Below are positions 1,670-28,595 of a stretch of 64,000 nucleotides of DNA, piece by piece. Source of the stretch: Paragordius varius (taxonomy: Eukaryota; Animalia; Nematomorpha). Made by a program: the position numbers and the translations under genes. Positions within the stretch are counted from its first letter, which is position 1. Every line of letters begins with the position of its first letter. A model generated the notes under the pieces. The model had not been told where the DNA came from. It did not search any database and saw only the letters and a list, made by a program, of their open reading frames with translations. The DNA lies in NCBI GenBank assembly GCA_964247055.1, contig OZ176057.1:4464001-4528000 (forward strand). The letters are read 5' to 3'.

Positions 1670-1686
1670 TTGTGCCAGGTATAAAG

Positions 1687-1734
<48 letters not shown>

Positions 1735-6283: not shown

Positions 6284-7459
6284 TTTACAACTAACTTGTT
6301 TTTGATAAGTTATTTAAAAAATAATTAATATATTAAAAAAGTTAAAGATTACAGGCATTTTTAAATTGATAGCTGAACCATTTATTTTTTCAGGTTTGAA
6401 TTTAAGAAAATTATCCACTATTAGAGTTCCCATGGTGATTATGGTTTTTCTTACGAGTGATAAAAATATTTTTGTAATAACTGCTACATACCGAAAAATC
6501 GCAAAATTTGATATTATGCTTAATAAAATTTTTTGGTTTATATGTCAATGCTTCATTCCAAAAATCACCATTAATTAGCAAAAAAAATTTATAAAATTTA
6601 ATTTTTCGATATGAGCGTCCAAAAAATTTTGGTCACCTCCAAAATGGGCTAGATTTTTGCAAAAAAAACTGAGATTTTGCGATAATTTTTTTTAATATGT
6701 GCTACATTATGACATCAAAAATTATGTTTGTAAAAATGCATATTTTTTTTTATTTTATTTTTAGCAAAATTTTGTGGAAGCGTACTTAATGATTTTTAAG
6801 CACGATCGAAACCGTATAAAAATATTTTAATATTTAAAAACAATTTTTATAAATTTATGATGCTGACTATTTCTATTACCTTAAAATTATAATTTAAAAA
6901 ATCGTTTGCTTTCAAATTGGGGAATTTTGTAAAAATTAACATTAATATTACATCGACCCATCTGACCCAACTTCAAAAATGAAAAATTCTTATTAATTTT
7001 ATATCAAAATTAATATTTATACCAATTTTTATAAATATCTATTGTTATCGATTTATTTTCAAAGTTTATTCTCTCTTTTATCACTTATCCTATACTTTAA
7101 ATGTTGTTATAACATACCTATTCACATTTTGTTTTGGACGTAGGACTTACCGTTGGCCTTTTCCAATAATTTGCCTATTAATATTCTCTTGAAATATATA
7201 GATTGTATTCTTGGATAAGTATTGTAGACTATTTTATTTTAATTTTCACTATGACATAAAAAACCCTTGATTTATATTGTTATACATAAATTTTGCTATA
7301 AATATTTTTATTGCAAAATATAATTTACGTTTTTACCTATAGACTAGGTTTTTTTAACATCTATCAATTTGTCATAATTAGTTCGACCCTACAATTTTAT
7401 TATTTTTATTTGTTTGTTTAAAGCTGTCAAATGAGTATTGATATGTATAGTAATAACCG

Positions 7460-10300
7460 GTCAGGCTTGCCAGCCGCGGTTTTCGTGTTGTGGCCAATAA
7501 TACAAAGAGAATGCATAGAAAAAGGGGATGCTTGTTTTTTGCTAGTTTAAATGTTGGTTCATTGAAAATTAAGTTAAATGTTATTGTGAAATTAATGAAA
7601 GTTAAACATATAGATATTTTGGCATTACAAGAGACTCGTTACCGCGGAAACGGAGTAAGGACTTTGGAAGAGAATTATTGATTATATTACTCAGGTGAAA
7701 GTGACGGACGAAATGGAGTGGCAGTTATCATTAATCCCAAATTGCCCAATCAGGTTAAAGAGGTTAGATGCTATAACAGCTGAATCATGAATTTAGATAT
7801 TTTGGTAGGTAACGAGGTCATAACGGTATTTAGTATATATGCCCCGCAAATAGGTTTACCAAAACAAGAAAAGGAGGAATTTTACGATACTCTTGATGAA
7901 AAATTAGTCGCTCTCCCTCAGCTCAGAGTCAGGTTTTTATGTGGGGATTTTAATGGTCATCTTGGTTCAAATAGGGAATCTTTTGAAATATGGCACGGGG
8001 GACATTCTTACAGAGAAAGAAACGAGGAAGGAATTGATTTGCTTAGATTTGCATAATCTCACAATTTGGCAATAGCGAACACGTTTTTCGAAAAAAGAGA
8101 GAGTCATCTAGTAACTTACAAAAGCGGCATAAACAAATCTCAAATAGATTTTATACTTGTCCCAAGAGACTTATTGAAGCTTGTATTAGACTGTAAGGTC
8201 GTGCCAAACATAGAGGTTAGCGCAACATAATTTACTTATTTGTAAATTTTTTGTCAATGAAAAGTCTAAACAAATTGTTCCTTTCTCAAAGAGATTAAAA
8301 AGTATAAAGTAGGAGAAATTTTCTGAAAAAAAGCAGGCTTTTATAAAAAAATACGGTTATCCGAGGATGGTGGGTTAAATGGTGAGTGGGATAAGTAAGT
8401 CAGTTAATCAAAAAGGCAGGAACTCTAGTTTGTGGAAAAGGCGGAAAATCTCAAGTATACAGAGAGGCTTGACTCGATGAACGAATTATATTGATGTCAC
8501 GAGAAGAAGGTAAGACTTTTGACAAATGGAGACATACAAGGAATGATGATGATAGAAGTATAAAAGTTTAAATAATGAATTGAAAAAATTAGTCGGCCAG
8601 GTTAAGAAAGAAAGGATGAATCTATTTTATGATGAGATAAATAGTAAGCAAGGTATAAACAAAGTGTATAAAGTTGCGCAGCAAAGGAATAAACGCAGAA
8701 TGGATTTGTCAGGTTATGCGACTGCAATAAAAGGAAAAGATGGAAACTTGCTGTGCGAAAATGTAGAAATATTAAAATATGGAAAGAGTACTTTGTGAGT
8801 TTAGATGAAGGGGTAGGCGAGATTTTTTTGCCAAATAAAGTTGAAGCTACTGATAGACCAATAGAAGCAATTACACAAAAGGAAGTAGAATCCAATTTGT
8901 TAGAAATGCCAGACAACAAGGCTGTAGGATCGGACGACATAAATAGAAATTGTTGGAAAGTGCTAGGAAACGCTGGATTAAATTTTTTGGAGCGTGTATT
9001 TAATAAAGTTGTTTCAACTTAAATCCCGGTTGAATGGAAGGAAAGTTTAACTGTGCCTTTATTTAAAGGAAAAGGTGATAAAAATGAATGTAGTAACTAT
9101 AGAGGGATAAAACTAATGTCGCACACTATGAAATTGTTTGAAAAAATAATTGAAAAGCGAATCAGGAAAATGATATTTATAGAAGGAAATCCTATACATG
9201 CGGTTAGGAGGTTGATTGAAAAACACATTGAAAAAAAGAAAGAGTTACACGGGGTTTTAATTGACATAGAGAAGGCGTTTGACAGGATTCCTGGAGAAAC
9301 TATTTGGTGGAATCTCCGTCGTAAAAAAGTTGCCAGAAAGTTATATTAAGTTGTTAAAAATAATATACGAATCACACACCTCCAGGATTAAAACCCCACA
9401 AGGTTTATCAGAGCCCTTTTCAATAAAGCATGGAGTCTACCAAGGCTCATCACTCAGCCCCTTATTGTTTATAATTTGTATGGACGAGGTAGCCAAGGTT
9501 GTTAATGTGAGTTCAGATGACATAATCATCTTGTCTGATTCATTAATTGAGTTAAAGCGAACGGTAAACAGATGGGTTGTTATGATGGATCAATACGGTC
9601 TGAAAGAAAACAAAGCAAAAACCGAATTTATTTCTTTTGGGGGTCCACAACATGAAATTGTAATTGATGATAATTGGGTTCTGAAGTGTAAAGAAAGTTG
9701 CAAATATTTGGGAGTTATGTTAAGTGCAGATGGTTCGTTGATTGATGATATTAATTTAAGAATAAAGAGCAGCTGGGTAAATTGGAAGAAAATTTCGAGC
9801 GTGTTATGCGATCGAAATATTGATGTTAGAGTGAAAGGTAAGATTTACAGTTCTATTATCCAGCCCTCAATGATGTATAATTCACAGACGTAGGGTGTCA
9901 AAAAATCCGAAGAAAGACATTTTAACGTGACTGAAATGAAAATGCTCAGAATGATGTGTGGGGTAACAAGAAAGGACAGAATTGAGAATTGATTTATTCG
10001 TGGGAGCACAGATATTAAACAATAGTGGAAAGGATGACAAAAAATAGGCTACTTTGGTTCGGGCACATTGAAAGGAGAGATTCTAATTATATTACAAAAA
10101 TGACAGATAGTCATATAGTTGAGGAAAAACGAGGACGTGGGCGGCCTAAAACAAAATGGATAGATACAGTAAAAAGAGAGCTAGCAGAATACGAGCTTAA
10201 TGCAGAGGACGCCATAGATAGAGTTTTATGGCGAGACAGGGTTGTATAACATGACCGCTCTCACGAGTGAAAACATGTAATGTAATAATAAAATAATAAT
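7460..10300 (+). mobile_element. Degenerate RTE-clade non-LTR retrotransposon (APE endonuclease + RT pseudogene)
   Basis: ORF fragments 7490-10249 carry FASLNVGS, ILALQETR, SIYAPQ, LCGDFNGHLG, PLFKGKGD..CSNYRGIKLMSH, DIEKAFD, QGSSLSPLLF, KYLG, RGRGRPK..W. Many stops, frameshifts and deletions; (TAA)-rich tail near 10278-10300. No clear TSD, so ends are approximate. Confidence 0.93.
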
Positions 10301-10648
10301 TTCATATATATTTGACGAACTGATCTTTTTTATCCAAATCATGGGGTAATCGAAATGTTTAGCATCATCGAATTTAAAAAATGCTTTTATAATGTCATAA
10401 AGCGTTTTTGTACCGCTTTCGCATGCTTCAAAACATGAAGTATGCTTAAGAAATCAACTTAAAAAAAAGATGTATTTTTCAACAATTTTTTTATGTTCAT
10501 GTACGACAAAAAATTTAATCGCAAATTTTTGGGTTTTATTGCATTTTTAAAAAAACTAGTCCGTTTCGGAGGTGACCGAAAGGGAACATATTTTTACAAT
10601 TAAATTAAATATTGTTTTGCCCAATAAATGAAATATATGATATATATC

Positions 10649-11271
10649 CCAATTGCACTTCAAGAGGGTCCTTGAACACTTCAGGTTGGTCTTAGAACAA
10701 GTTTGAACATTCAAATTGATTCTTAACGGTTTCAAGTTGGTCATTTGACTTTTTTGTTCTGTTTTTAACTTCCATTAATCGAATTGTACATCATTCATAT
10801 ATTTTATCGTTTTTAGCATATTTTCTATTATTTTACATGGATTTTAAATCATCATCACTTATTTATCATTCAGAAACCGTATATCTTAATTAATTTCTTA
10901 AATTTATTTTGGATATATTTAAAATTTTAACACATAATTAAAAAATATATAAGTTTTCTGGGTTATTATTCATTGAAAACATTTAAAAGTTAATAATTTC
11001 GTTAAATTAGAAAAAAAATTATTTTAAATCAAAAACGTGGTTTTTAAATAAAAATGTTTATTATTAAATGAATATATATATAATTAATAAAGAAGTTAGG
11101 TTAATAAATAATATGATAAAAAAATTAATGCAATGGTAAAAATTTAATAAAGACCACCTTGAAGTGTTTAAAGACCAACTTCAAGTGTTCAAAAAACAAC
11201 AGTGTTTAAGGACCAGCTTAAAGTGTTCAAGAACAAATTTGAAGTCAAGGATACTCTTGAATTACAAATTA
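10649..11271. mobile_element. 21-bp-array MITE family, copy 1
   Basis: Degenerate TIR CCATTTGCACTTCAAGAGTGTCC with subterminal 21-bp tandem units (TCCTTGAACACTTCAAGTTGG-like) in inverted orientation at both ends. Confidence 0.8.
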
Positions 11272-11776
11272 TATAATAATAATAATTTTGGAATGACTCT
11301 TTTAGGTAAAAATATATTTAGCATGATGTGGGCAATTGCATTTCTTATATAGGGTTACCACCAAAGTATAATTGATAGTTTTACACACTGTCAAACATTT
11401 TAAACATCGTAATTAACATCTATCAGAATATATATTTAATCAGGATATTCCTCCAAGATTTTAGACTTTCGGAATCCACATAATGTTTCGTATATATCAA
11501 AATTTAATTTTATAGCGGGAATTTTGTTTTGACTTGAAGCAATTACGACTAGAGTGTAAATTTTTTATTCTAAAGGCCCGACACCTAAAAACCATGAGAA
11601 GACTGATATATTTATCCATCAAAATATATATAAATATTTTTATGTGTCACTGTTTATATAAATACATTTATGTTAATATATGATAAAGTTATCTAAAATT
11701 TGCCAAAAAATGAATTGAAATGATATAGTTAATGTTAACACATTAACTATATCAAACAGTGTTTGCAACATTGTAG

Positions 11777-11791
11777 GAATTTTTGCACATG
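11777..11791 (+). CDS. Gene B micro-exon, 15 nt (GIFAH)
   Basis: cattgtag|GAATTTTTGCACATG|gttgat; weaker splice sites than the others. Confidence 0.5.
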
Positions 11792-14700
11792 GTTGATATA
11801 AAAGATGTCATATTATCTATTTATTCATTCATTTTCATTTTGAATTATAAGAATTCATGAATTTTACACAAATTCTTATAAATTTTTTACTCATAAATTA
11901 TTAGCGTTCAACTATGAGACCCATTTGCAATAGTTTAAAACATGACTGGCTTTAAGCTATAAAAAAAATTATTGATTACCCATTATATTTCTAACTTTTT
12001 GTCTCTTTAACCTATATTGTTTATAATTTTAGAGGTGGGTTTTGAAACAGGTTAGCAATTACACAACAAATTATTTTTAGTGTGTTGAAAATTTTTAAAT
12101 TTAAATTAAATATATAGAAATCAATAATTCAAATTTGCTATTATATAGGGGCTGTCGGAGAAGGTAGTATTGATATATAAAACTTACGATTACCAAAATT
12201 TTAGGATAAAACATACATGTGGGACAAAATATAATGCAAAAATAAGAACTATTATTGGTATCTGTATTGAAATGGTTAAAAGCGTAGACATGTTTGATAT
12301 CAGCTAAGATTTTACATTTTTACTAGTTACATTGAAATTATTACTAACATGATATTAAATTGCAAACAAGTGCTACTGTATTTTCTACACAAAATGCAAT
12401 TTAAATTAGATAGCGAATTTTGTTTTAAATTTAGCTGTTGATTCCATAATTATTACTTCTTAATACATAATAATAAATATAATTATAAATAATTGTCGCA
12501 AAAATTATTTATTTAACCCATAAAATGATTATTACAAATTTATGTATACCATATTTTAGTCAAAAGCAACGCTCTTTCGACCAAACGCAACATTGTTAGT
12601 TCCGTTTGGATCAAAATGTTGAGTTTGCTTGAAAAATATTGCCTTTGCCTAGAAATTTGTTGCGTTAAAAAAATGTTGCGTTTACTTGAAAAAATGTTGC
12701 TTTTAATTGTAAAATGGTATATTAGGGCCATACGTAGTGCATGTAATTACCTGAATAAAAATATACGGGTCTAGTGGTTTTTAAAAATATAACAATATTT
12801 CTTCAATATTTCCGCAATTTTAATATTATATTAATCGTATTTAGCGGCTGCTGGTATGTGATATACATTTTGCTTTTCAGAAATAACCATATATCTCAAT
12901 TTTTAATTACCTAACGATACAGTAAAATTAGCTTACAAAGGCTAAAAATTATATAAATTCTAACCTCTTTTCGTGTTTATTTTAAAATGGAAACTGAATC
13001 CAAAGATTTATTAGAAAATTCCCGGTGATATTAATACAATATTCAACAGCTAAAATACCTTTGGGACTAAATAACTTAACCTAAATAAAATTTTTAAAAT
13101 ATATTTATTTATTATGTCCTAAAAAAATATAATAAAAGACCCAAAATCTAATTTATGTGTCTCCTATTATAATTAAAGGTTTCCTTTAAAACTAATACTC
13201 CTCATTTGACTCATATATGATATAAAGAATTTTAATAATAAATAATCTTTTTTCTAGAAGTGGGAACTGAAACAGGTCATACACTATGCTAAATTTAACC
13301 CAATTTAAAAAATAAGTGTTTATGATTCTCTATAACTGGGTCTCCAAAGAGGTGACCACCCACTTAAAAAATGACCATATGAAAAAAAATTCCAAAAATT
13401 TTTAACACTTCATTGAATTTTTTTATAGTTGTAAAGGTGTAAAATAATTATTTTTTAATTATGATGCCTATATTTTGAACATTTCATTCAACCTTAAAAT
13501 CAGTCGATTCCCTGAAATATATCATTTAACTTGAGCAAAGCTCTTGACGAATACAACAGAAGTAGAAATTAATGTTTTATTAAGAGAAAAGTTAAAATCG
13601 CATAAAAATAAATGGGAAGAAGATTGTAATGATAAATGAGACCTTGTCTCATTTTGCCTATAAGGAACCCAAGAATATATTAATTGAAAAAGAAAACACT
13701 TAATCGCCCCACATAAATGCATACTTAAAAAATAAGGACTAAATTATTACGATTGCTTCATTTAAGGTAGCTGAAATTTAAACCCCAAACAATAAACCAT
13801 TCATGATGAAGAACTTTGGAAAAAAGTTATTAACGGCTTTAAAATCTCGTTCAATAATTTCGAGAACATAAATATCATAACAACTATTAACTCAGTTTAT
13901 CCAGAAATACAGTTAGGAAAAAGCGTGTATTTTTAATTTTTTCAATTTTTATTTTACATTAGTAAGGCAAGTTGTAAATTTTATATTGAAAATTTAATAT
14001 ATAAATATTTTCACGTGCTTTATGCCAGTTAAAAAATTTAGGCATTTAGAAACCCGTCGTATTTTGTTTGAAATATTATTTTGATACAATATTGAAATTA
14101 AATTATAAAGTGGTATGGACAAGTGACAATGCATTCATACATTATTATAAAATATTTTTCAAATTCTATAAACTGTATTTTCTAATTAATTTTCCAATTT
14201 TTTAATTTTCGCTAGGAATTGTCGGCGGAGAAGGTACGTTAAATTAGATTCACGAATATGGACTAATTTTACTGACATGCTTTTTGAAAAAAATAGATAT
14301 CATATACCCAATAATCGATTAATTATACCTTATATAATCTTCAGTGGCTGCGGGTATGTGATACATTATATATTTTTTTTCTAAAAAAATTTTTATTTTC
14401 AAACATGTATGTCTTTCAACGGTGATATTGATCATATATTACACTGGATAACAAATTTTTCTGCCACTCGAGTTTTTTGCATTTTCTGATATTTAGTATC
14501 ATTCTAACAGTAAATCTGAAATAAAAATTATAACCCGATGGAAGAATTTTGTATAATTTGATTTTTTTGATTATGCGCCTTCTTTATCAAAAGTTTACTA
14601 AAAAATGTTTTACTTTGAAAAAATACAAGTAATGCCCATTTGTAATTAATCATTCGAAAGAGTAATAAAAACTCTATAAAATGCATACTAATATGTATTA

Positions 14701-17700
14701 CATCGACAGTTATTATTGGACACAAAGAGCGACAAACGCGCGAAGCGAGAGCACTTTTTTTCATTATTATATTTTAAAAACTAATGGATGAAAATAGCTT
14801 AAACTATGTTTAGATGGTGATGAATGTCCAAAAAAGATAAAAGCTGAAAGTTTTTTTGATTAAAACATTTTTTTATTCCTTTTATGTCACTAAAAACAGC
14901 GATTTTTAAGTTTTTTGTTTTTTAAAAATTACCATCTCATCAATATTATTTTATTTTCTTTACGAGGCTGATAATTTCGAAATTTTAAAGATAAAAACAA
15001 AGTTTATATTTGATCTTTTATAGCCATAATAAATTTACAGTTATAACTTTGCATTTTAGTATCCACTAGGTAAAATAATTATGATAATAATAATTTTTAT
15101 TAAAAAAGCAAACCAAAAGCTTTTTCAAACAATTTTTTTAAATTAAATACTAATAAAACCCTATTAATTATATTAAAATAATTTATATGATTTTCAAATT
15201 AGTTTATCTGTGAAAATTCTTGACTTATTTAAAGAATAAAATTTTCGACCATTTAAATCCAAATAACTTTTACATCCGATTGATTTAAATGACTTACTAC
15301 CATTTAAAAGATGCAGTTTTTTGAGCTCTTTCGAATGATATAAAATACATGGCTTCATATCTAAAACTTTTAATTCTCGAAATTTCGAGTTTAATGTTAA
15401 ATCGGGGCAAAAATTATTGATAAACTCTAATATAAAAAAATACTTGCATGCTAGACCAATTTTCTTTTCAGATATACTAATTATGTACTTTAATAAAATA
15501 AATTTTAAATTTACAGGAATGGCAGGTAAAAGTTAAAATTTGTTGTCTAGTGTTTTAATACTTTTTCAAAGATATATAAGAAATTTGTTCTAAGATACAT
15601 ATGCACAATATTATTTATTACCTGAAAATGTTTTGGCGGCATTTCTACACATGACCTGAAAAAAAAACCAGATGATAAAATTTAAATATCCAGTTATAAT
15701 GTTTAATAAATTTAACCGAAAAAAATCAAATACAAAACGCAGATTAGTTATCATAAAAGATTAAAACGGGAGTTTACAGTTTAACCAGAAATAGTGCGAT
15801 TGCTAATGGTACCGAAAGATAATATAGCTAATTCCATTTTAACTAAATATGTAAATTTTGAAGTTATATTAAACCAAACCTAGAAATTAAACCATTTATT
15901 AATCGTGGCAACAAAACGACTTTTCTACCAATCTCCTAAATATTTAAGGTCCAAAATCGTAGCATATAAAAAAACTTCCTGATGAAATATATATATATAT
16001 ATATTCTGATAAGAAAATCTAAATTATCATCGTGCTTTTGGTTTTGGCCTTTAGGGGAGAGTGATTAAGACTTTTGACGTAAGTTCGGCACATCAAAAAA
16101 TGGCAAAACTTGGGCACATTTAAACAAAAAATTTTTGATGAAAGCTTGATGCTTCATTCAAAAATATCACTAAAAAATAACATCAATAACATATAAAAAG
16201 TAAAACAATGTGCTTTTTAAAAATATAGTTATAAGTGAGTTCCGAGACTCCCAAAATTTTTCTTTTTTATGAAATGGGCTAATTCTCTAAAACGCAAAAA
16301 TATCCGAGATTGCCCGTTAAAAATCTAAATATGCTAATTTTTGATATCCACAACATTTTATAAAAAATGCATACTTTTTCAAAATTATATTTTTAACAAA
16401 ATTTATCCTAAACGGTATAAAACTTGAATATATTTAAATATTTTATCTGTATAATTCAGTATGCTGAACACCTCTATCACGTTAGAATTTTGATTAAATT
16501 ATTTGTTCGTCTTCAAATATATGTTAATGAATTTTGTCTTTTTAAAAAAAATCCAAATTTTTTTTTAAAATTTTGAAGCGATACAAACGTTCAGCTTCAT
16601 CGATTTATTTAAAAAATGTTTTTATTATATTTTAAAGTTTTGTATACAGTTTACATCCTACCTAAAATAGTATGAAGTACGCTTTAATGAAATTTCACTA
16701 AAAATTAAATTTTTAATAAAGTATGCATTTTGGGTTTTGGTACCAACAATTTAAATATCAAGTTTTAAAATATTGTTAATATTTATATGGAGTATAAAAC
16801 CATTATTCATTAAAAAAATCTATTTAGATTTTTGTCAATATCTGATTAACTTTCTTGTAAGGACCAAAACGATTCCCTGATATTCATAATATATTATCCT
16901 ATCAGAATTATACAATTTATCAGGATATTTTTTTGTAAACTCTGTATAATTGTATAACAAAACTGTTTCGAAAAATATAATTTATATTTTTGGGAGTTTT
17001 TTATATTTTTTATATCTTATCTATAAATATTTACAAGAAAAAATAGTAAGCTTTATTAGAAAAAATAATTATAAAATAACATACCGATAAATAAATTGGA
17101 TAATGATTTAAATACACCAGATAAAACTAATTTTTTTGTTAAAAATCAAGGATTTGGTTATACAAATCATACGAGTTAGGTTTTAATTTGATGTGAATTT
17201 CTTATGTGTAAAGCTATATTTATTTATATTTTAGAAGTTGGGACTGAAGCAGGTTTTTCATTGTGTTTAATTTAATCAAATAAAAACTTTAAAAACATTT
17301 GGCATTCTTTATTTAAGTATAACAAATTTTTTTACCAATAAAATGGTAAAATAAATATTAAAAAACATTTTAAGTTGTATATCTAATTTTTTTTCCCTAG
17401 CTGCCGTTGAAGGTACTCAAATATAATATAATTTCATCCTCTTTATTGTTATACGATTGCACCATAGTTATTTTGTTTAGTCGGTAATAGATATAAAATG
17501 GTGCAATTTGGGTTGAGTTTTTATTCGACCGTAATAACCGAACTGACTGCTTATGAATGGCCGTTTTCTATTCATAAATACCATAAATGGTTTCATATAG
17601 AGAGAACTAAACAGTAATTATAAAATCTTAAAAATATCTCATTTTTTAAATTAATTCCAATGACATTTAATTTCTCAATGGGATAAAAATTTCTGTCTGT

Positions 17701-20700
17701 TATTTGATAAATGCATTTTCAATCATAATTATGATGAATTCACCATTTCTCATAAAAATATTATAAATTATAATATAATAAAAATTTACAATAATCATTA
17801 AAAAATCTAAAACATTAAATAATTTTATACTGTTAGAGAGATTTAAAATTTACAAATTTAAGACTAATTAAACATCCTATATTATGTGTTAATAAACATT
17901 TGTCATGATTAAAGTTCTCATCTAGAAATTTGAATTTTAATATAAAAGGGTTTACAAGACAGTTTCCCCCACCTTTGTTATGTCATCCCTACTAATATTA
18001 GTGCTTCTTAAAAAAAGTCTAAAAAACGGCTTTCAAAAATCGGATTTGACTCAATTCCTAAAATAAATATTGTATTAATTTTAATTCTTGCATTAAATTT
18101 ATAATATATGGAACTTATTTAATTTAATATTTGGTTTTTATCGTGAAAACATCAAATGTTGATTTATATGTTACAAATATTAAAATTCTATTGTAGAATA
18201 AAATAGTCAAAAATGTACTATTTCACGTCCTCCTTTTAAAATATTTTAGTAATCACTTTACCACTGAATTCTGTAATAATCCAAGGCAAAAAAACTAACC
18301 TTGCATTATAAAAATAAAATATCCCAAGATTTAGTGCTACAATCCATAAATTTTGGGGCATCTTATTAAGGTAATAAGCCGTATTTAAAAATATTCTTTC
18401 TTTAACCTTCTAGGAGGTTTTACATAAAAATCTTAAAAATCATTATCTCAAACTTTTTTGCCGCCATTTTTTCCGATAAATTTTTTTACTAATGCAACAG
18501 CCAAATAAATATACATGATTAAAAAACGTTAATTATTTTTAAAAAGCTTTCAGGGTACATTTTACCAGCAAACACATGGTATATTTTAATTTTAATAACA
18601 GCTGTTTCTATCTGTTTTGAACCTGATCTAATTTTAGACTCTAGAAGTCACAAAACTGTAAAAATTTAATCTTTATCTAATACATGAGAACAATGTTTGA
18701 AATTCAAAAAACTATAGTTTTCAAGAGCTTATATATAACTACCCCAAAAGGTAAACTGAGATTAAAAAGGTGGAAAAGTAATGAAGTGTTAAATATATAT
18801 TAAAATCTAAATCAAATAAAAAAAACTAATTAAAAAAATTAGCAATTTATCTTTAGCATATTATATTTTATTCTTTGGTCGATAGGGGCAGGTATTTTAT
18901 ATTTATATCATTAAATTTTAAAAATTTGCCATCAATAATATTTATTTTTATTTTACAGTTGTTGCAGGTATTTTATATTCTGTAAAAATTTTAAGATTAA
19001 TCAAGATTTTATATAGAAATTTAAAATATTTATAATATATTGAATGATATATGGTTATCAAAAATGCTTATCAACCTACTCAATATACTATAAGATTTGC
19101 ACTTCAAGAGTGTCCTTGAACACTTCAAGTTGGTCCTTACATATAAGTTGGTCCTTGAACACTTCAGGTTGATCCTTGAACACTTCAAGTTGGTTATTAA
19201 ACATTTCAAGTTGTCCTTGAACATTTCAAGTAGGTCCTTGAATACTTCAATTTGGTTCTTAAACATTTCAAGTTGATCCTTAAAATTTTAAATTTTGATT
19301 TAAACATAATTTTTGCATGTATTTTTTTATTATTTTTTTAACGTAATTTCCTTCTTTTTATTCATTTTAAAAAACCACATTTTTGTTTAAATCTATTATT
19401 TTTTTCAATTTAACGAAATTTATAACTTTTTAATGTTTTTAATGAAGATTTGTTAGCCCATAAAACTTATATATTTTTTAATAAAGTGTTAAAATCTAAT
19501 AAATGTCCGAAATATTAAGAAATTAATAAACATATAGGGTTTCTCCATGATTAAAGTTGATATTGATTTAAAATTAATGTTGAATTGAAAATAGGTCAAA
19601 ACGATAAAATAGATGAATGATTTACGATTTGATTGATAAAGGTTTAAAACACAAAAGTCAAAGGACTAGCTTGAAGTGTTCAAGGACAATTGAAATAAAG
19701 GACCAACTTGTGTTCAAACACTCTTGAAGTGCAAATGGTTATCTTATTATACCTCTTTTGAAAGTTTTGGTGCCTAAAACAGTTAAATAAGTCAAAAAAA
19801 AATTCTAAAATTGTATTCATAAAATGGAAAACTATCAAAACCTCAGATTTTATAAATTGTTTTTTAATTAGATTAATATTAGAGTATTAATTTAAATCCT
19901 ACTTAATATTATGTTTTTTATAGAGGCTGGTGGTATGTTATAGTTATATTTAGAATAGTAGAGTGTGCCAAGTTTTGACGAAAAATTTTGATTTTACTTT
20001 TTTAGATTTAAGTATAATCTATTAGGTCCTTGTGCGTTTGTTATAGTATAACACTTTCGATTTTTGTTTGAGTTATAATATAATTGTAGAATATGGGTTT
20101 GGAGCCCTGTTTAAAATATTATATATTATATTTATAATATATTTATCTGTATAAAACCAATTTAATTAATTAATTATAATTAATTTAATTTTTATCTATT
20201 TTGTATTATAACGCATCGCTGTAATACTATTTTGCCCAAACCATATATTTAAGTGTTTTAATATTTTTCCTAAATTTTATGATTCAAAATTTGCCATCGT
20301 AAAAAATATTGAAATATATATTAAATAGCAAATTATAAATGGTAAAATCATGAAACAACTAGTTTCGTTTCCTGAAATATAAATTATTTTTAAGCCGAAT
20401 GAATTTCCAGTATGCATTTTATTGTCTATTAAGTATTTTTTTGCCAATTAAATATAAGAAATGGTTTATCAAATGTGAAAAATACTGCTCCACAAAATTA
20501 ATTCGTGCATCACATATGAAAGAGGTTTGACGTGAGAATTAACATAGGCTTAATTTGATGGATATTTTGTATGCTAAATTTTTAGAATATTATAGCAATG
20601 TTAACCTTTGAATTTATTGTTGATACGTATTTAGATGCGGAATTATTTGGGTTTTTATGTTTAATATATTAATAAATACTAAAAAGTTAATTTATGTTAA

Positions 20701-23700
20701 TTTCTCTGTTTAAATTTAATAATTAATATTTACCTGTATTATGCAAAATAGGTATTTTTATTTTATATAGTTGTTAATACTAATTAGTGAGTATTTATGT
20801 AGAGATTTTTTTGTTTTTTTAGGTTTTTCATTGTTAGTTAATAATAATTTTTTTAATATTTCTGATATTTTAATAAATATAGATAAAAGTTGCTTTTAAT
20901 AAATTTCCTAAAATTTTAAATTTTTTTGTTATTTTTAATTAACATTGTTAATTGTAATTAATTATCGAATATTATGGACATTTTTTAAATACAGGTAAAA
21001 ATTACGTTTTTAATAAATTTAGTAAAGTTTTTAATTTTTTTTGTTATTATTTAACACTGTTTATTGTTATTACGTATAACATATTTGGACGTTTTAAAAT
21101 ACAGGTGAAAATTGCGGTTTTTTAAAAAAATCAATTTTTCGTTCAACCTTACTAATTGCTATTGTTGTTGTTGTTGAGCTTGTAGTCGGTTATCGACCAT
21201 TAGCGATTTTGTAGGAAAACCTCCTCCATTCGGTTCTGTCGTGAGCTTTTTGAGATAGTTTTTGCAGTGACAATTTGGAAAGTGATAATTCGTCTACCCA
21301 GCGAATACGTCTGCGTCCTCTTCCTCTCTTACCATTTACCTTTCCTAACATAATATCCTTTTCCAAAGAATTGCCCCGAATAATGTGTCCAAAGTAACCG
21401 AATTTTTGTTTTATTATTTTACCCCGAAGCGTTGTTTGTGCATTAATTTTATTTACAATATCGATATTCTTTATTTTGTCCTTCCATGTTATATCAAGTA
21501 TCTTTCTCCAGCAAAACATTTCAAACGCTTTTATTCTTTTTTCGTCTTCACTTTTGATAGTCCAGCTTTCACACCCGTATAACATGATAGGAAAGATTAA
21601 TGCATTTACTAGTCGGATTTTTGTTTTAAGGGTTATGTCATGAGATTTCCATAACTTGTAGTGTGAGGATAGAGCGCATTTGGCTATAGCTATGCGTCTT
21701 CTTATTTCTTGGGAACTGGAGCTTAAGTTGTTGATAATGCTTCCAAGGTATGTGTATTCGTTGACTACTTGAATTGTTTCGCCATTAATCCGAAGCGAGT
21801 CATAGGAATGAGGGGAGTTGATATGTAAAATTTTAGTTTTGTTGAGGTTTAAAGTAACATTGTATTTTTTGCACACATTTATAAAAGTTCGGAGACTGTT
21901 TTCGAGGTTTGTTTGTGAATTTGCTAAGATAACCGTGTCGTCTGCGTAGTTTAGAGTCGTCAGAGTGTGACCCCCTACTTTTATTCCTGGCAGATTTAGA
22001 TCCCTCATGATACATTCCAAATATATGTTGAACAACATGGGGGATAAAATGCAGCCTTGACGCAGACCTATGTTCATTGGGCTCCAAGAGGTTGGGCCAT
22101 GCGAGGTGTTAAGTGATAGGTAGGAGTTGGAGTATATGGATTTAATTAGTTTGATTAAGTGATCGGAAACTCCTATTTGTTTAAGGGCCTTCCAGAGAAT
22201 GTCATGTTGAACGGTATCAAAGGCTTTAGAAAATCCACGAAACATAGGTGTAGCTCATTTTGGAATTCACAGTTTTTTTCCATTATCCATCTAAGTTTGA
22301 GATCATGTCTCGGCATCCTCTTTTTTCTCTAAAGCCTGCCTGTGTCATTGATATTTCCGGTTTGACATATGTTTGTAGACGGTTTTGTATTATTTTTAAG
22401 AAAACTTTTGAGGTTTGATTGATCAATGCTATTGTACGGTAATTTTCACATAGTTTAGAATCGCCCTTTTTGAATATAGGGACCACTAGTGATTTGTTCC
22501 AGTCCGTCGGGAATGTCGCCTCATTGAAAATTTTTTGAAATAACGAAAGAATTAATTTTATGGGAATGTGCCTTTGTAACTCGGTAGGGATATCATTGAA
22601 TCCTTCTGCTTTGCCGGTTGATGAATGCTTCAGGGCCCATTCAATTTCTTCTTTTAGTATAGGAGGGTCATAAGTTTGTTCAGAGTTCATGGCAGTTATA
22701 TTTGATGTATTCTTTCCAGAGTTTAATTACTCCTTTTTTATCGGTTAGAAGTTTTCCGTTTGAATGAGACATAGGACATTTGTATATTTGTTTTTTGCGC
22801 GGTTGAATGTCTTTAATATAAGAGAAATAGTTGTGATTAAATTTAGCAGCTTGCTCGAGGTTAGCGCAGATTGTATTATAATGAGATTCTTTGTCAAATC
22901 TTATGCTTTTTTGTAGTTCATTATTAATATTTTTGTACTCAAGGGGAGTGCCCTTGGATTTTGCTACTCTTCTCTGTTCAATTAGGTCGATGCTTTGTTG
23001 TGATATGGTGAATTTTTTGTTTTTTGTAGTGGCAGGCGGTATATATTCTTTAGCTGTTTCGATGGTAATTTTGTGAATAGTAGACCAAAGATCATCTGTG
23101 TTCAATGTTTCGTATTTTAGGGATTCAAATTTATTGTTAAGGATTGGAGTAAAATCGGCAGGTATAAGTTTGTAGTTCAATTTAGTTTTGGAAAAGTTTT
23201 TTTGCGGCTGAGGAAGTTGTAGCTTTATTTTGATCTTGGCCATTAATAGGTTATGATCTGAGTTGCAGTCTGCACTCGAGTAGCACCGGATGTTTTGAAA
23301 TGAGCTTTTGTATTTTTGCATTCCCAATATGTAATCTATTTGATTCCTGTGTTTACGACACGGTGAGGTCCAGGTGTAGAGCCGTCTCTTAGGTTGTTTG
23401 AAAAACGAGTTCGCTATAAAGAGATTGTTTTGTTGGCAAAAATCAATTAGCCTTTCACCACGGGGGTTTTTCACTTTACCAAGGCCTTTTCCACCTGTGA
23501 ACTTGTCTGTTTTATCGTTAGCTAAGATAGCGTTAAAATCGCCGATGATGTATGTTATGTCTTTCTTGGATGTTTCACAAAGAGCCATTTGTAATTCATT
23601 ATAGAACTTTTCACATTCGTCTTCGGGTGAAACACTCGTAGGGGCATAGATTTGATATATTGTTATAGCCTGGGGTCTGGTGTTGATTCGTAGGGATATA

Positions 23701-26700
23701 ATACGATCGGAGATAGGTCTATATATATCAGTATGTTTGGCAAGATTATTCGATATTAAGAAACCGCATCCATTTCGTTTGAGTTCCCCGCCAGAGTTAT
23801 AAAACGAGTAATTGTCGTATATTTTGTGTGAGTTATGTTGCATATGAGTCTCCGACAGCCCTAACACATGGATGTTTAAACGTTTCATTTCGCGAATTAT
23901 TATATCCAATTTGTTATCTGAAGTACCACAGGTATTCCAGGTGGCCATATTTATTTCTAAGTTACGGGAGCTTATTTTAGAATTATGGCTTTCCATGTAG
24001 GAATTTAGTTTAGTGGTGGTGTATTGAGATAAAGGAATAAATAGAAAGAATCAGTATGATATGTCCACTGATGTTTAAGAATGGTTTTTAGGGAATGAAA
24101 TTGTCGATGAAAATTTTGGAGTTGTATGTTCTGTAGAAATAATTCATTATTATAATTCTGAGTGATATAATTTCCGGATAATAAAAGTGATATTAAATTG
24201 ATGAAGATAATGAGATAAATTCCGTTTATCACCGAATGTGAACAAGAGTTCCTATAAAATCAAAAGGTACGCGCATCTCGGGAGTGAACATACCAAGTTC
24301 TTCTCCGCGCCTGTAGCCGATCATAAAAAAGTGAATTGCTATTAATTACTATATATTTTTGATACATTGATATATAAAGGTAAAATTACTATGGTCTTCG
24401 GTTTTTTTTAAATTTTTAGGAAAATTATTTTTTGTTTTACATTGGTATCTATGTATATATATATTAAATATAGTCATATCTCTGCAAGGTAAAAATGCAT
24501 GTTGCGGTTTTATGTTTGACATTTTATTTAACAAAATCCAACTATGTATATTAAACAACCTCCTTATGTAACCAATATGAGAATTTAAAGATTGCAAAAA
24601 GATTAAGATATATTTATTTAAATTATAATTGCGTATCTTACTGTATAATTATACAAAAATATTCATATAATGTTTGACCTTTTTGTGTTGCTCTATTATG
24701 AGTAAAATTAATATTATTGTTATTGATATTATAACAGGTAAATTGTGTTGATTCTAATATTAATATACGATGCGGTGTGCGTTCATGGTGATCATAACTA
24801 ATAAGGAATTATCATAAAATACCAAAAAATCACTAGTAGGAAGATCCTAAAAATTACAATCCCCATCATTTTCTGGGATGATTTATCAGCTAAATAGATA
24901 GAAACGCAATTAATTACAGTATTAAAAAGCTATACCTGGATTCTAGTATTTTCATCAAATATTGAGAGCTAAAACATTTAAAGTTTGAAAGGGCACTAAA
25001 TTAGATTAAGCTCCTCTTTTATCATTTCCACTAAAGTTGCAAAAAATATTTTCTTTATGTAAAAATTCAAAAAATGAAATTTATATGTTCAATCAGCATT
25101 TTCGTTTTACCAGCCTAATCTAAAAAAGAAAAACTATTCCTTTACCATAGGTTTAGTTTTTGGTTGTTGCATTCAAAGCTTTTGGAAAAAATTCTTATTT
25201 TCATTTTCTTTTTTCATTGATGAAAGCACATAGCTTTTTCATATTTTAATTTAGCTAGAAAGAAATGCAGATTAGACTTATTAAAAACATTTTTAATTTT
25301 TTTTTCATTAAGAAAATATTTTTTTATTGAAATGATAAAAGTGGTTAATTTTATTTAGTGCCCTTTCAAACTTTGGATGTTTTAGCCCCCAATATGATAA
25401 AAAATACTTATCTAAGTATAGCTTTTTAATACTTTAATTAAATTTCTATCTATTTAGCTGATAAATCATCATAGAAAATGATGGTGATTGTAATTTTTAG
25501 GTTCGTTTCCTAGTGACTTTTTGGCATTTTATGATAATTCCTTATTCTAAGTTAAGATCACCATGAACGCACACCGCATCGTATATTAATATTAGAATCA
25601 ACACAATTTACCTGTTATAATATCAATAACAATAATATTAATTTCTCTTATAATAGAGCTGTCAAACATTATAATATGATTATTTTTGTATAATTATACA
25701 TTTGTAATATACGCAATTATAATTTAAATAAATATACCTTGATCCTATTTTGCAATCTTTAAATTTTCATATTGGTGATATAAGGCGGCCGTTAAATTTA
25801 CCTAGTTGGATTTTGTATAAAATGTCAAACACAAAACCGCAACATGCATTTTTACCTGTATGCAGAGATATGTTAATTATATTTAATATATTTATATATT
25901 TATATATATATATAGTTTACAATGTATAACAAAACAATAATTTTCTTAAAAATTTTTAAAACCGCAGATCATAGTAATTTTACCTGTATATATCAATGTA
26001 TCAAAAATATATAGTAATTAGTAACGATTGGCAAGGTTGAACAGAAAAATTAAAAATTTATAAACACCGCAAATTTTACCTGTTTTTATTGAAATGTCCA
26101 AAATTATTAAGTAATTACAATTAACAATGTAAATTAGAGTAATTAAATATTACAAAATTTAAAAACCGCAATTTTTACCCGTGTATAAAAATGTCCAAAA
26201 TATGTAATAAGTAATTACAATAAACAATGTTAAATAAAAATAACAAAAAAAATTAAAAATTTTACAATATTTATTTGTGTATTTATTTATAATAACTAAA
26301 TAAATTATAAAAATACCAATGAGCATATTATGGGTATATATATCATGTTGAAATATTAAATATTAAATTTAATTAGGAATAATTAACATAAATAATCTTA
26401 ATACCTTTTTTACTTTTTATTAATATATTAAACATAAAAACCCACAAAATACCGCATCTAAATACGTATCAACAATAAATTCAAATGCTAACATAAATTT
26501 CTATAATATTTTCAAAATTTAACATTACAAAATATCCATGAAATTAAGCCTAACGTCAATCCTCTTTCATATGTGTACTACAAATAATTTTGTTTTAATA
26601 AATATTTATTTTACTATCATGTATTTTAACATTAAAAAAAATTATTTTCAACCAACTCTCTGAAAAATATTTTTTAACCCTTAAAATCGACCCTTTGATC

Positions 26701-28063
26701 CAGAATATAATGTACTATATAATTATGTAAGTTTGACATTTTATAAAATATTATATTTCAAAACCAAAAGTTATCTTAGATTAGAATTAATTGTTATATT
26801 AAAAATTATAATTTTTTAATATTTTATATAATATTTATCATAGGGTTGTCCAACGCAAAAATATTTGCGGGGTGCTTTAGTTTTTTTAATTATTCGAGTC
26901 CAATTTTGGATTTCTAAATTTTAATTTTTGATTTATTTTTTAAAAAAAAATTAGAGCGCTTTTGCCAACATTAAAAATATTTCCCTATAACATATTCAAA
27001 CACTTGGTACACTTTATAATATATATATTTGCATTAAAAATTAATATTTTTTTAAATATTTGTAGCCGGAGCAGTTGTAGAAGGTTAATATTTAGCTATT
27101 TAAATCAATTATATAAAATATTTTTATTTTTATATTTATTAATAGAGGTCATCCTAGGTAAAATTTTTAGTGTATATTTTTAAATATTATCAAGTCATAA
27201 GAATATTTGGTTTTATCATTAATTATTATGGCAAAGTCTCCAATTCTTTTTATTTTATAAATGCAATATACTTTCATAATAAATCTTTCTATTTAAAAAA
27301 TTTAAATATTGTACATATATTAATACACAATTATCAACATTTTCAAAAAGTGATTATTGTTTTAGTGGAAAAAGTTACCTGGCTAAGGCTAACTCCTGTA
27401 TAAATTGTGCAGTCGTTTAAATCGTTAACTTATTAAATCGCTAATTTTTAAAAATATAATGTAATATCAAGTGATAATTTGGTTGGTGAATTTATTAAAT
27501 TAAAATTTTATATTTTGTTTCTTAAAATTTTAAAGTTATAGTAAAATTTTCACTATAAATCACCAAGAAATGCATAAACAACCACTAAAATAATTTATAA
27601 TTTGTTTTAACACTACATTAGTTCTCTGCACTTGATATGAAGAGTTGCATTTGAAATATTTTAGCAAATTTTTCTTAAATTCATTCAATTTGAAAATATT
27701 AAAGACAGTTTGACTAATTTTTAAGCATATGGATGGAATAATTGTTTTGTTTAATAATCTATATTTCTAAAATATAAAAAAAGGTTGGTAAAATTTACGG
27801 TTTTTTGACGCATTTACATACTAGCCATGTGGTTAATTTTTAGGTTAATAGACTAAAAACGTTGCATTAAAAAGAAAAACACACCGATCAAAATATAACT
27901 ACCACTCTTTAATTTTAATCGCTAAAGTGATTAAATATATTTTTGTACTTGAATGTTATATATATATTTTTTCACTTTTAGCTATTTTGTCCGGTAAAAT
28001 TTTTTTTTACCAATTATTTAAATTAAAAAATTTTTATCAATTATTTTATTATAGCACTCGCTA
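11777..28063 (+). CDS. Candidate micro-exon gene B (19 symmetric micro-exons, 222 coding nt), Gly/Ala/Val/Glu-rich repetitive peptide
   Basis: GC-rich islets flanked by AG/GT, each a multiple of 3 nt and phase 1. Spliced product has no stop: GIFAHEVGFETGAVGEAAAEVGTETGIVGGEVAAGMAEVGTEAAAVEVGGAVVAEAGAGAVVEEVILAILSALA. First and last exons unresolved. Confidence 0.75.
12033..12050 (+). CDS. Gene B micro-exon, 18 nt (EVGFET)
   Basis: aattttag|AGGTGGGTTTTGAAACAG|gttagc; homologous to 13258 and 17235 exons. Confidence 0.8.
12149..12163 (+). CDS. Gene B micro-exon, 15 nt (GAVGE)
   Basis: ttatatag|GGGCTGTCGGAGAAG|gtagta; homologous to 14216 exon. Confidence 0.8.
12845..12853 (+). CDS. Gene B micro-exon, 9 nt (AAA)
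   Basis: gtatttag|CGGCTGCTG|gtatgt; homologous to 14345 and 19924 exons. Confidence 0.8.
13258..13275 (+). CDS. Gene B micro-exon, 18 nt (EVGTET)
   Basis: ttttctag|AAGTGGGAACTGAAACAG|gtcata. Confidence 0.8.
14216..14233 (+). CDS. Gene B micro-exon, 18 nt (GIVGGE)
   Basis: ttcgctag|GAATTGTCGGCGGAGAAG|gtacgt. Confidence 0.8.
14345..14353 (+). CDS. Gene B micro-exon, 9 nt (VAA)
   Basis: atcttcag|TGGCTGCGG|gtatgt. Confidence 0.8.
15517..15525 (+). CDS. Gene B micro-exon, 9 nt (GMA)
   Basis: atttacag|GAATGGCAG|gtaaaa. Confidence 0.75.
15978..16924. mobile_element. Representative of an abundant AT-rich non-autonomous DNA element family (CCTGAT...ATCAGG ends)
   Basis: Imperfect ~30-bp inverted ends. 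Shared internal motifs (GATGCTGAACA..TCTA..TCAGAATT and inverted TGAGGTGATAGAAATGTTCAGCATC; AACGCAAAAATGCCGAGA) recur in partial copies near 2.6-3.5, 6.4-7.0, 10.3-10.6, 29.8-31.7, 48.5-50.2 and 52.6-53.25 kb. Confidence 0.6.
17235..17252 (+). CDS. Gene B micro-exon, 18 nt (EVGTEA)
   Basis: tattttag|AAGTTGGGACTGAAGCAG|gttttt. Confidence 0.8.
17401..17412 (+). CDS. Gene B micro-exon, 12 nt (AAVE)
   Basis: ttccctag|CTGCCGTTGAAG|gtactc. Confidence 0.8.
17481..17483 (+). CDS. Gene B candidate 3-nt exon (V)
   Basis: ttattttgtttag|TCG|gtaata. Confidence 0.4.
18414..18416 (+). CDS. Gene B candidate 3-nt exon (G)
   Basis: ttctttctttaaccttctag|GAG|gtttta. Confidence 0.35.
18886..18891 (+). CDS. Gene B candidate 6-nt exon (GA)
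   Basis: ttctttggtcgatag|GGGCAG|gtattt; 67-nt intron to the next exon. Confidence 0.5.
18959..18967 (+). CDS. Gene B micro-exon, 9 nt (VVA)
   Basis: attttacag|TTGTTGCAG|gtattt; resembles the 1670 exon (VVP). Confidence 0.78.
19093..19739. mobile_element. 21-bp-array MITE family, copy 2 (inside a gene B intron)
   Basis: ATTTGCACTTCAAGAGTGTCC ... CACTCTTGAAGTGCAAATGG; about 8 tandem 21-bp units in the left arm. Confidence 0.85.
19924..19932 (+). CDS. Gene B micro-exon, 9 nt (EAG)
   Basis: ttttatag|AGGCTGGTG|gtatgt. Confidence 0.78.
20492..26593. mobile_element. Fold-back element with ~1.3-kb inverted arms and ~300-bp spacer, left arm interrupted by a LINE
   Basis: 20492-21163 plus 24344-25028 match the reverse complement of 25329-26593 (an ~80-bp perfect stretch around GAACGCACACCGCATCGTATATTAATATTAGAATCAACACAAT). 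Internal ~105-bp subrepeats. No TSD seen; outer ends approximate. Confidence 0.85.
21164..24333 (-). mobile_element. RTE (BovB-like) LINE, near full length, frameshifted
   Basis: APE ORF 22680-23996 (MATWN, LGLSETH, IYAPT, IIGDFNA, NQIDYI, SDHNLL) and RT ORFs 22283-22690 and 21190-22245 (SKAFD, RQGCILSP, LNYADD, YLGS). (CAA)n tail; 10-bp TSD AATTGCTATT at 21154-21163 and 24334-24343. Confidence 0.96.
27066..27083 (+). CDS. Gene B micro-exon, 18 nt (AGAVVE)
   Basis: atttgtag|CCGGAGCAGTTGTAGAAG|gttaat. Confidence 0.78.
27146..27157 (+). CDS. Gene B micro-exon, 12 nt (EVIL)
   Basis: attaatag|AGGTCATCCTAG|gtaaaa. Confidence 0.72.
   Translation, partial: RSS
27982..27993 (+). CDS. Gene B micro-exon, 12 nt (AILS)
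   Basis: cacttttag|CTATTTTGTCCG|gtaaaa. Confidence 0.7.
28055..28063 (+). CDS. Gene B micro-exon, 9 nt (ALA), or start of a terminal exon ending at TGA 28093-28095
   Basis: ttattatag|CACTCGCTA|gtaagc; read-through gives ALASKLLPLLYNY*. Confidence 0.65.
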
Positions 28064-28595
28064 GTAAGCTTCTACCGCTTTTATATAACTATTGAGATTG
28101 GGTCGCCGGTTAACTTAACATATTAAATTTTTCATAGCATTTAAAAAGCAAATTATTAATTTATTTAATATATAAAATTTAATTTTAGCCTATTATATAA
28201 AACGCACTAGGTTTCTGACCGGCTGGTATTCTCCGACACCCAATCTTTTAAAGATTTTCCAACATAAACTATTAATATTAAAATATAATCTAGTGATATA
28301 AGTAATTATTAACTCTTTTTTTTGTATATCGCAATGAAAAATTTAATTATATTTAATATGTTTTCTAGCATGAAGCAATACATTTGTATAAAATGGTGCT
28401 TGGGAAATACCATGGCTTAGTTAAATAAAAAATAATGTAATTTTATTGTATATTTTTAAAATATATTACATACGCCTTATACATTCAATGATTAATCTTT
28501 CTAATCGGGTTAAATATAAAATTAACTGTTTTGTTTTCATGTTTTGTGTTATAATGAGTAAAAAATGTTGCTATCTTAACATTAATTTAATAATA

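Follow-up and report, generated by a model that had tools for sequence, protein, structure and literature searches.

Genes made of exons of 6-18 nt escape gene finders, and the micro-exon design has, to our knowledge, been found up to now in genes for secreted fluke and aphid proteins. In the Schistosoma micro-exon genes (MEGs), the coding sequence lies mostly in short exons whose length is a multiple of three (3-81 bp, many of them 15 bp), the introns are long, and skipping any one exon leaves the reading frame intact (10.1101/2023.06.21.545858). The bicycle genes of aphids also contain many micro-exons, nearly all of which begin at codon position 2, meaning that the introns are in phase 1 (PMC9168663).

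Here we describe a series of probable coding micro-exons on the plus strand of the window (the whole stretch of 64,000 nucleotides that was analysed), together with a group of same-phase exons upstream that would encode FFAT-type motifs. Through such motifs, cytosolic proteins attach to VAP proteins resident in the ER. The FFAT motif is defined as an EFFDAxE core with an acidic flank, and two FFAT-type motifs have been reported for PTPIP51 (PMC8306308).

Results

The core series comprises 16 GC-rich islets on the plus strand, present at the positions where the original prediction had placed them. Every islet is flanked by YAG and GT and measures 6-18 nt, apart from a longer last exon (41 nt); the length of every internal exon is divisible by three. 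The exons have a GC content of 55.7%, compared with 23.6% in the surrounding DNA.

12033-12050, plus strand: micro-exon A1, EVGFET, 18 nt; aligned with A2 and A3
12149-12163, plus strand: micro-exon B1, GAVGE, 15 nt; 98-nt intron after A1
12845-12853, plus strand: micro-exon C1, AAA, 9 nt; tatttag / CGGCTGCTG / gtatgtgata
13258-13275, plus strand: micro-exon A2, EVGTET, 18 nt
14216-14233, plus strand: micro-exon B2, GIVGGE, 18 nt
14345-14353, plus strand: micro-exon C2, VAA, 9 nt; 111-nt intron after B2
15517-15525, plus strand: micro-exon GMA, 9 nt; tttacag / GAATGGCAG / gtaaaag
17235-17252, plus strand: micro-exon A3, EVGTEA, 18 nt
17401-17412, plus strand: micro-exon AAVE, 12 nt; acceptor ttttttccctag, donor GTACTC, 148-nt intron after A3
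18886-18891, plus strand: micro-exon GA, 6 nt; gatag / GGGCAG / gtatttta, 67-nt intron to the next exon
18959-18967, plus strand: micro-exon VVA, 9 nt; ttattttacag / TTGTTGCAG / gtatttta
19924-19932, plus strand: micro-exon C3, EAG, 9 nt; ttttttatag / AGGCTGGTG / gtatgtta
27066-27083, plus strand: micro-exon AGAVVE, 18 nt; contains TAG in phase 0
27146-27157, plus strand: micro-exon EVIL, 12 nt, where the hydrophobic end begins; 62-nt intron upstream, donor GTAAAA
27982-27993, plus strand: micro-exon AILS, 12 nt; acceptor ttttttcacttttag, donor GTAAAA
28055-28095, plus strand: probable last coding exon, ALASKLLPLLYNY; TGA at 28093-28095

The exon that starts at 28055 could alternatively end as a 9-nt exon (28055-28063) with a GTAAGC donor. 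Introns of the core series range from 62 to 7133 nt, and in six pairs of neighbouring exons the intron between them is short, at 62-148 nt. When the five upstream exons described below are included, the acceptors are TAG in 18 cases and CAG in three, and the donors are GTA (16), GTT (4) and GTC (1).

The original prediction had seen no comparable series on the minus strand and had proposed counting such islets on each strand and in shuffled sequence. We scanned the non-transposon parts of the window blindly for YAG-(6-18 nt, GC>=0.44)-GT[AT], allowing any length. Candidates divisible by three numbered 17 on the plus strand and two on the minus strand, against 3.6±2.0 in 500 block shuffles (maximum 12). 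The original observation is confirmed, and these strand and shuffle controls exclude a series produced by pure chance.

The prediction had counted about 19-20 exons; 16 are supported and the remainder fell away. Its first exon, GIFAH (11777-11791, plus strand), has a GC content of 0.33, a weak donor (GTTGAT), no ATG and no paralogous copy. For the two 3-nt exons, V at 17481-17483 and G at 18414-18416 (plus strand), a relaxed scan found YAG-NNG-GT sites to be abundant elsewhere on both strands, and support for the islet at 28097-28108 was not above chance. We also rejected two candidate exons at 10048-10056 and 10560-10571, which look repeat-derived because similar sequence, judged by eye, occurs elsewhere in the window. 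A possible MITE at the stop codon was discarded as well, its 16-mer being found just once in the window.

Phase 1 is the only frame without stops across all 21 exons (16 core plus five upstream; 327 nt), and the peptide that the islets give in this phase is the one originally reported. When the letters are shuffled within exons, any given frame stays free of stops in about 3% of cases with the core exons alone, falling to about 0.1% once the upstream cluster is included. Read in phase 1, 43 of 50 codons begin with G, and A or T makes up 70% of third positions, the pattern expected of coding DNA in a genome of 24% GC. Phase 2 contains many stops and was set aside. Phase 0 is open from 12033 up to the TAG inside 27066-27083; read in this way, 86% of third codon positions are G. 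Very probably the micro-exon series is coding DNA that undergoes splicing and has a symmetric phase-1 architecture.

That much of the proposed unannotated micro-exon gene stands. A complete gene does not: the claimed exons contain no in-frame ATG, and a search within 1-12033 for a signal-like phase-1 first exon yielded none. The suggested secretion of the product likewise finds no support.

Part of the series is repetitive. A three-exon cassette, EVGxET / GxVG(G)E / xAA, is present in two complete copies and further partial ones. When A1, A2 and A3 are aligned, 12 of 18 exon columns and the splice sites are invariant, whereas the flanks agree at about 25%, the chance level. C1, C2 and C3 have a common GTATGT donor and intron start, GTATGTGATA. 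These alignments demonstrate that the cassette copies are related and that their exons are conserved. Splice sites, divisibility by three and the open frame are intact in all 16 core exons despite the divergence of the introns, which implies purifying selection since the duplications.

Five further phase-1 exons, which would encode an acidic tract, lie upstream on the same strand at 1670-4429.

1670-1678, plus strand: micro-exon xVP, 9 nt; tttatattttag / TTGTGCCAG / gtataaag, the weakest member of the cluster
1791-1814, plus strand: exon DSESEISN, 24 nt; ttttttgtag acceptor, GT donor, phase 1 alone open with its neighbours
1898-1927, plus strand: exon EDFENDIGES, 30 nt; good pyrimidine tract, GTAATA donor
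2463-2516, plus strand: exon DASEEFFDAESDVESYFD, 54 nt; FFAT core EFFDAES and the start of SYFDADT
4421-4429, plus strand: micro-exon ADT, 9 nt; aaatttttttggataatag / CCGATACAG / gtaaaaat, completes the second FFAT-like motif

The exon at 1898-1927 has a TAG in phase 0, which fixes phase 1 for the upstream cluster. The last exon, 4421-4429, could alternatively be the end of a first exon that begins with the ATG at 4384. Both FFAT-type motifs have acidic flanks, ESDASE before EFFDAES and AESDVE before SYFDADT. With the pattern [EDST][FY][FY]D[AC]x[EDST], 0.27% of composition-preserving shuffles had one match or more, and none of 200,000 had two or more (p below 5e-6). The presence of two FFAT-type motifs implies a cytosolic protein, and we infer from the upstream exons a predicted cytosolic VAP-binding protein. 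A gap of 7.6 kb that contains transposon fragments separates the upstream cluster from the core series; no in-frame stop was found between the acidic exons and the micro-exon series (phase 1, same strand).

At the other end of the series the encoded peptide becomes hydrophobic. A 19-residue Kyte-Doolittle window gives 1.75-1.86 over the last 33 residues (VILAILSALASKLLPLLY, then NY and the stop), a stretch whose 3′ exon boundary is ambiguous. The tail holds Lys and Pro and is preceded by two Glu, which makes it a marginal transmembrane segment. Tail-anchored membrane proteins lack a signal peptide and have one hydrophobic transmembrane segment, no more than about 30 residues from the C-terminus. 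The C-terminal segment here, which closes the reading frame, may insert into the membrane as a predicted tail anchor.

The introns are heavily invaded by transposons, and the largest, of 7.1 kb, houses two elements.

20598-26494: large foldback element with inverted repeats, located in the 7.1-kb intron
21190-23996, minus strand: non-LTR retrotransposon with endonuclease and reverse transcriptase ORFs, within one foldback arm

The inverted arms of the foldback pair 20598-20702 with 26390-26494, 20910-20985 with 26187-26262, and 24334-25022 with 25332-26029, and are 81-95% complementary. The retrotransposon matches the Pfam families Exo_endo_phos (4e-11) and RVT_1 (1e-25). Rfam and tRNA scans returned nothing.

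DNA runs of the same organism and of four related organisms contain the locus. The 77-aa micro-exon product had no match at E<=0.1 in a database of 5.8 billion protein sequences, and no homologous protein was found for the MGA-domain ORF. Three ORFs of the window were searched for contigs encoding them, with none on record, and a 42-mer across a spliced junction was absent from metagenome contigs. Sampled 31-mers, among them some from the presumed 3′ exon, did not occur in the RNA runs of the species, which are few and small; for micro-exons such a test is nearly blind.

Discussion

Our preferred explanation, which we hold tentatively, is that the micro-exon series constitutes the 3′ portion of a larger gene rather than a gene by itself, made of spliced phase-1 exons for an acidic FFAT region, a micro-exon linker and a hydrophobic tail anchor. 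The earlier exons would include the acidic ones at 1670-4429, and probably more lie upstream of the window. The product of such a gene would begin with an acidic tract bearing two FFAT-type motifs (EFFDAES and SYFDADT) and continue with a linker about 55 residues long, in which Glu, Gly, Ala, Val and Thr are abundant. It would end at the C-terminus in some 20 hydrophobic residues divided among four micro-exons, the predicted tail anchor. Repeated duplication of the three-exon cassette would have built the linker, and skipping of exons divisible by three would alter its length. In this model the exons would be spliced as drawn, both clusters, which share phase and strand, would belong to one transcript, and the predicted protein would bind VAP. 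A more specific version, which we consider very unlikely, is a membrane-contact-site tether whose spacer and anchor are encoded wholly in frame-neutral exons of 6-18 nt, so that skipping could set its length or remove the anchor.

The same islets could instead form an independent small gene of the MEG or bicycle type, with an unrecognised signal-peptide first exon and a secreted or surface-anchored acidic Gly/Ala-rich peptide diversified by exon skipping. Symmetric phase-1 micro-exons are indeed typical of both MEGs (10.1101/2023.06.21.545858) and bicycle genes (PMC9168663), and a possible phase-1 first exon runs from the ATG at 4384 to 4429 (MHYLYVKFFWIIADT). However, there is no convincing signal-peptide exon between 4.4 and 12 kb, the product has neither cysteine nor MEG or bicycle motifs, and no homologue was found. 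Moreover, the same-phase upstream FFAT exons are a simpler source of the missing 5′ end, and we judge an independent gene to be rather unlikely. Quite unlikely, too, is a decaying or dead gene, its micro-exons left unexpressed in introns swollen by transposons and foldbacks, or a chance series. The invaded introns, the uncertain start and end of the gene and the failure to find homologues would all fit a remnant, as would the lack of signal in the RNA runs, few and small as these are. Nevertheless, intact splice sites, lengths divisible by three and an open frame in every one of the 16 core exons are not what decay would leave, and chance fails on the strand and shuffle controls.

A gene read in phase 0 seems to us highly improbable. 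It would start with a signal-like exon at 1215-1256 (MISRYIILCLIFSN), continue with LCQ, IANLKLAM and so on, and yield a secreted amphipathic peptide of about 103 aa, rich in Lys, Leu, Gln and Trp (RWVLKQGLSEKRLLKWELKQ...), that ends at the TAG in 27066-27083. Its attraction is that the model would be complete from start to stop, with a phase-0 ATG exon that has a hydrophobic core at 1215-1256 and a frame open from 12033 to that TAG. The price is high: G would stand at 86% of third positions in a genome of 24% GC; the stop inside the well-formed 30-nt exon 1898-1927 would oblige the gene to use a poor internal acceptor; three further well-formed exons divisible by three would be left beyond the stop as 3′ UTR exons; and the two phase-1 FFAT-type motifs would need to be accidental (p below 1e-5). 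For these reasons the phase-0 reading (RWVLKQ...) was rejected as the main model.

If the larger FFAT-bearing gene is confirmed, it would be a case of the micro-exon design supplying the disordered linker and the membrane anchor of a protein that is probably cytosolic. This would suggest that the design is a general feature of this genome and not specifically a means of varying antigens or effectors. We know of no FFAT-bearing VAP partner whose linker and anchor are encoded in exons of 6-18 nt. Were the tether reading true, the design, beyond its use in secreted proteins of parasites and in effectors, would also serve everyday cell biology, and exon skipping could set the gap that the tether spans. 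Without such a gene model, an annotation would show this stretch as empty DNA filled with transposons; the locus offers a concrete primer and junction k-mer target for micro-exon splicing in this species.

Like the Schistosoma MEGs, the locus has symmetric micro-exons divisible by three, mostly of 6-18 nt, among introns of 62-7133 nt. Unlike them, it has yielded no signal peptide and no detectable sequence similarity, its product is without the Phe/Leu/Pro/Cys motifs described for MEGs (10.1101/2023.06.21.545858), and its same-phase upstream exons carry cytosolic FFAT motifs. With the bicycle and megacycle genes of aphids it shares a large number of micro-exons, here all of phase 1-1; aphid bicycle proteins, however, are secreted and have paired CYC motifs, whereas neither peptide here contains cysteine and no signal exon was found. 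The predicted product also resembles the membrane-anchored VAP partners ACBD5, ACBD4 and PTPIP51 in motif and layout: it combines an acidic tract and an EFFDAxE-type core with a long low-complexity stretch and then a hydrophobic segment at the protein end and, as in PTPIP51, there are two FFAT-type motifs.

Splice-bounded exons and tests against chance

The window has a GC content of about 25% and carries transposon debris throughout. A run of short GC-rich islets lies on the + strand from 12.0 to 28.1 kb, each with a pyrimidine/AT-rich tract and YAG before it and GT after it. Sixteen islets are well formed and make up the core set; five further exons lie upstream.

Exons of the core set and of the upstream cluster
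12033-12050, 12149-12163, 12845-12853, 13258-13275, 14216-14233, 14345-14353, 15517-15525, 17235-17252 (+): well-formed islets 1-8, YAG/GT borders
17401-17412, 18886-18891, 18959-18967, 19924-19932, 27066-27083, 27146-27157, 27982-27993, 28055 onward (+): well-formed islets 9-16, YAG/GT borders
1670-1678, 1791-1814, 1898-1927, 2463-2516, 4421-4429 (+): five upstream exons, splice sites as good as those of the core

Across the 16 core and 5 upstream exons, the acceptors are TAG (18) or CAG (3), the donors GTA (16), GTT (4) or GTC (1), and G is the final base in 20 of 21. The core exons have a GC content of 55.7%, against 23.6% in the DNA around them. Short introns of 62-148 nt separate six adjacent pairs of core exons, and the remaining introns span 0.4-7.1 kb.

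We scanned the non-transposon parts of the finding for YAG-(6-18 nt, GC>=0.44)-GT[AT], a pattern blind to length and frame. Candidates with a length divisible by three numbered 17 on the + strand versus 2 on the - strand, and 3.6±2.0 (maximum 12) in 500 block shuffles; the 12 other + strand candidates were mostly alternative donors within those same islets. The original prediction of an unannotated micro-exon gene had named this count as a refutation test, which would have gone against it had the minus strand or shuffled sequence yielded as many such motifs; because the blind scan gives a + strand excess, the test does not refute the prediction. We are fairly confident that the micro-exons are real coding sequence, and consider it improbable that the series is a relic or a product of chance. 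Four elements of that prediction are unsupported: 11777-11791 (which is low in GC, lacks an ATG and has a weak donor), 28097-28108, and two 3-nt exons, for which a relaxed scan found similar YAG-NNG-GT sites in many places on both strands.

Sampled 31-mers were absent from the species' RNA runs. This result is hardly informative on exons of less than 31 nt, but it argues mildly against expression of a long 3' exon at 28055 in the samples concerned. No relative of the predicted 77-residue product was found in the protein database, the predicted spliced-exon 42-mer was not found in metagenome contigs, and a search for flanking or orthologous DNA using ORFs of the window returned nothing.

Reading frame and cassette duplication

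Intron phase 1 is the sole frame that is stop-free across all exons. When bases were shuffled within exons, a given frame was open in ~3% of the core-set trials and in ~0.1% when the upstream cluster was included. Phase-1 codons have G first in 43 of 50 and A/T third in 70%, the pattern for a Gly/Ala/Val/Glu-rich protein in a very AT-rich genome. The exons could instead be read in phase 0 (RWVLKQGLSEK... from 12033), which is stop-free up to a TAG within exon 27066-27083. However, its third positions are 86% G and three more well-formed exons of length divisible by three lie beyond its stop, and we therefore rank it low. Given that the exons code, phase 1 is very probably their frame.

The exons make up a cassette of three, EVGxET / GxVG(G)E / xAA, present in two complete copies and a partial third, plus lone extra copies of member exons. 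An alignment of the three exons of the EVGxET type, extended by 60 nt on either side, is invariant at the splice dinucleotides and at 12 of 18 exon columns, whereas the flanks were ~25% invariant, the chance level at such composition. The exons of the xAA type share a common intron start, GTATGTGATA. The duplications are thus old enough for the introns to have been randomised, while the exons retained their sequence, their length and their splice sites. This retention of exons after duplication is the best available evidence of function.

Upstream FFAT-type exons and the predicted product

The upstream cluster is likewise open in phase 1 only, phase 0 being stopped inside the 30-nt exon, and reads VP-DSESEISN-EDFENDIGES-DASEEFFDAESDVESYFD-ADT. 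Its last two exons (2463-2516 and 4421-4429, +) hold EFFDAES and SYFDADT, each with an acidic flank ahead. The conventional FFAT motif, EFFDAxE with an acidic tract upstream, binds the MSP domain of ER-resident VAP proteins on the cytosolic side (PMC8306308). Shuffling the 41 residues gave at least one relaxed FFAT match in 0.27% of trials and two in 0/200,000. The two tandem FFAT-type motifs, as read from the predicted peptide, imply a cytosolic protein.

As a gene, the original prediction lacks a start codon. The acidic exons have no stop behind them, the micro-exon series has no start ahead of it, and both are in phase 1; a single gene is therefore the simplest model, and we think it slightly favoured that the two clusters belong together. 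They would be joined across a 7.6-kb transposon-bearing intron, with additional 5' exons probably outside the window. An independent secreted gene resembling the Schistosoma micro-exon genes (MEGs) seems unlikely; no convincing signal-peptide exon was found upstream of the micro-exon series. A short exon-like segment at 1215-1256 (+), running from an ATG (MISRYIILCLIFSN) to a GTAAAT donor, resembles a signal peptide; it is in phase 0, which does not fit the phase-1 exons downstream, and AT-rich sequence may have produced it by chance. At the other end, a possible 33-nt micro-intron (GTAAGC...TTGAG) lies at 28064-28096 (+), with a 9-nt exon before it and the 12-nt islet 28097-28108 after it; its use would carry the frame on beyond the assumed stop.

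The 77 predicted residues include A 18, E 12, V 12, G 12, one Lys and no Cys, and give a low-complexity stretch of ~55 residues downstream of the FFAT tract. They end in VILAILSALASKLLPLLYNY-stop, with a 19-residue hydrophobicity window of 1.75-1.86 that would be marginally compatible with a tail anchor. Such a protein would face the cytosol, held in one membrane by its tail, and its FFAT motifs would reach VAP on the ER, the micro-exon-encoded stretch serving as a flexible spacer. Skipping would shorten this spacer in frame, because all exons are multiples of three with phase 1-1. We hold the full FFAT-plus-tail-anchor model tentatively, at a little under even chances. That the predicted product looks intracellular is the distinctive point of the finding.

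Repeats and other features of the window

The 7.1-kb intron holds a foldback element of ~5.9 kb (20598-26494), its nested inverted arms 81-95% complementary, with a non-LTR retrotransposon (21190-23996, -; EN and RT ORFs) inserted in one arm; both lie wholly within this one intron. A repeated element, which contains a 21-nt tandem repeat (CACTTCAAGTTGGTCCTTGAA), occurs at several sites in both orientations, at 19100-19288 and 50009-50119 and as similar sequence around 10650-10700 and around 19660-19740; one copy falls within an intron of the predicted gene. The - strand at 32600-37300 retains parts of an LTR-type retroelement: a reverse transcriptase (Pfam RVT_1, 5e-15), plus ORFs resembling an integrase and a zinc knuckle. 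Short motifs that are almost identical, at 33561-33617 and 37249-37297, point to its two terminal repeats. A 232-aa ORF at 53733-54431 (+) has a Cys-rich match to Pfam MGA_dom (PF16059, 1.2e-09) and no homologue at E<=0.001 in a large protein database; it may be a host gene exon or a domesticated element.

Comparison with known systems

Among the features tested, membership of the schistosome MEGs or the aphid bicycle genes fails on signal peptide, family motifs, cysteine and homology, all of which are lacking. The series would work like a micro-exon gene and is placed in neither family: it has the micro-exon architecture in common with schistosome MEGs, and matches in both architecture and phase the aphid bicycle genes, in which nearly all internal exons begin at codon position 2 (PMC9168663).
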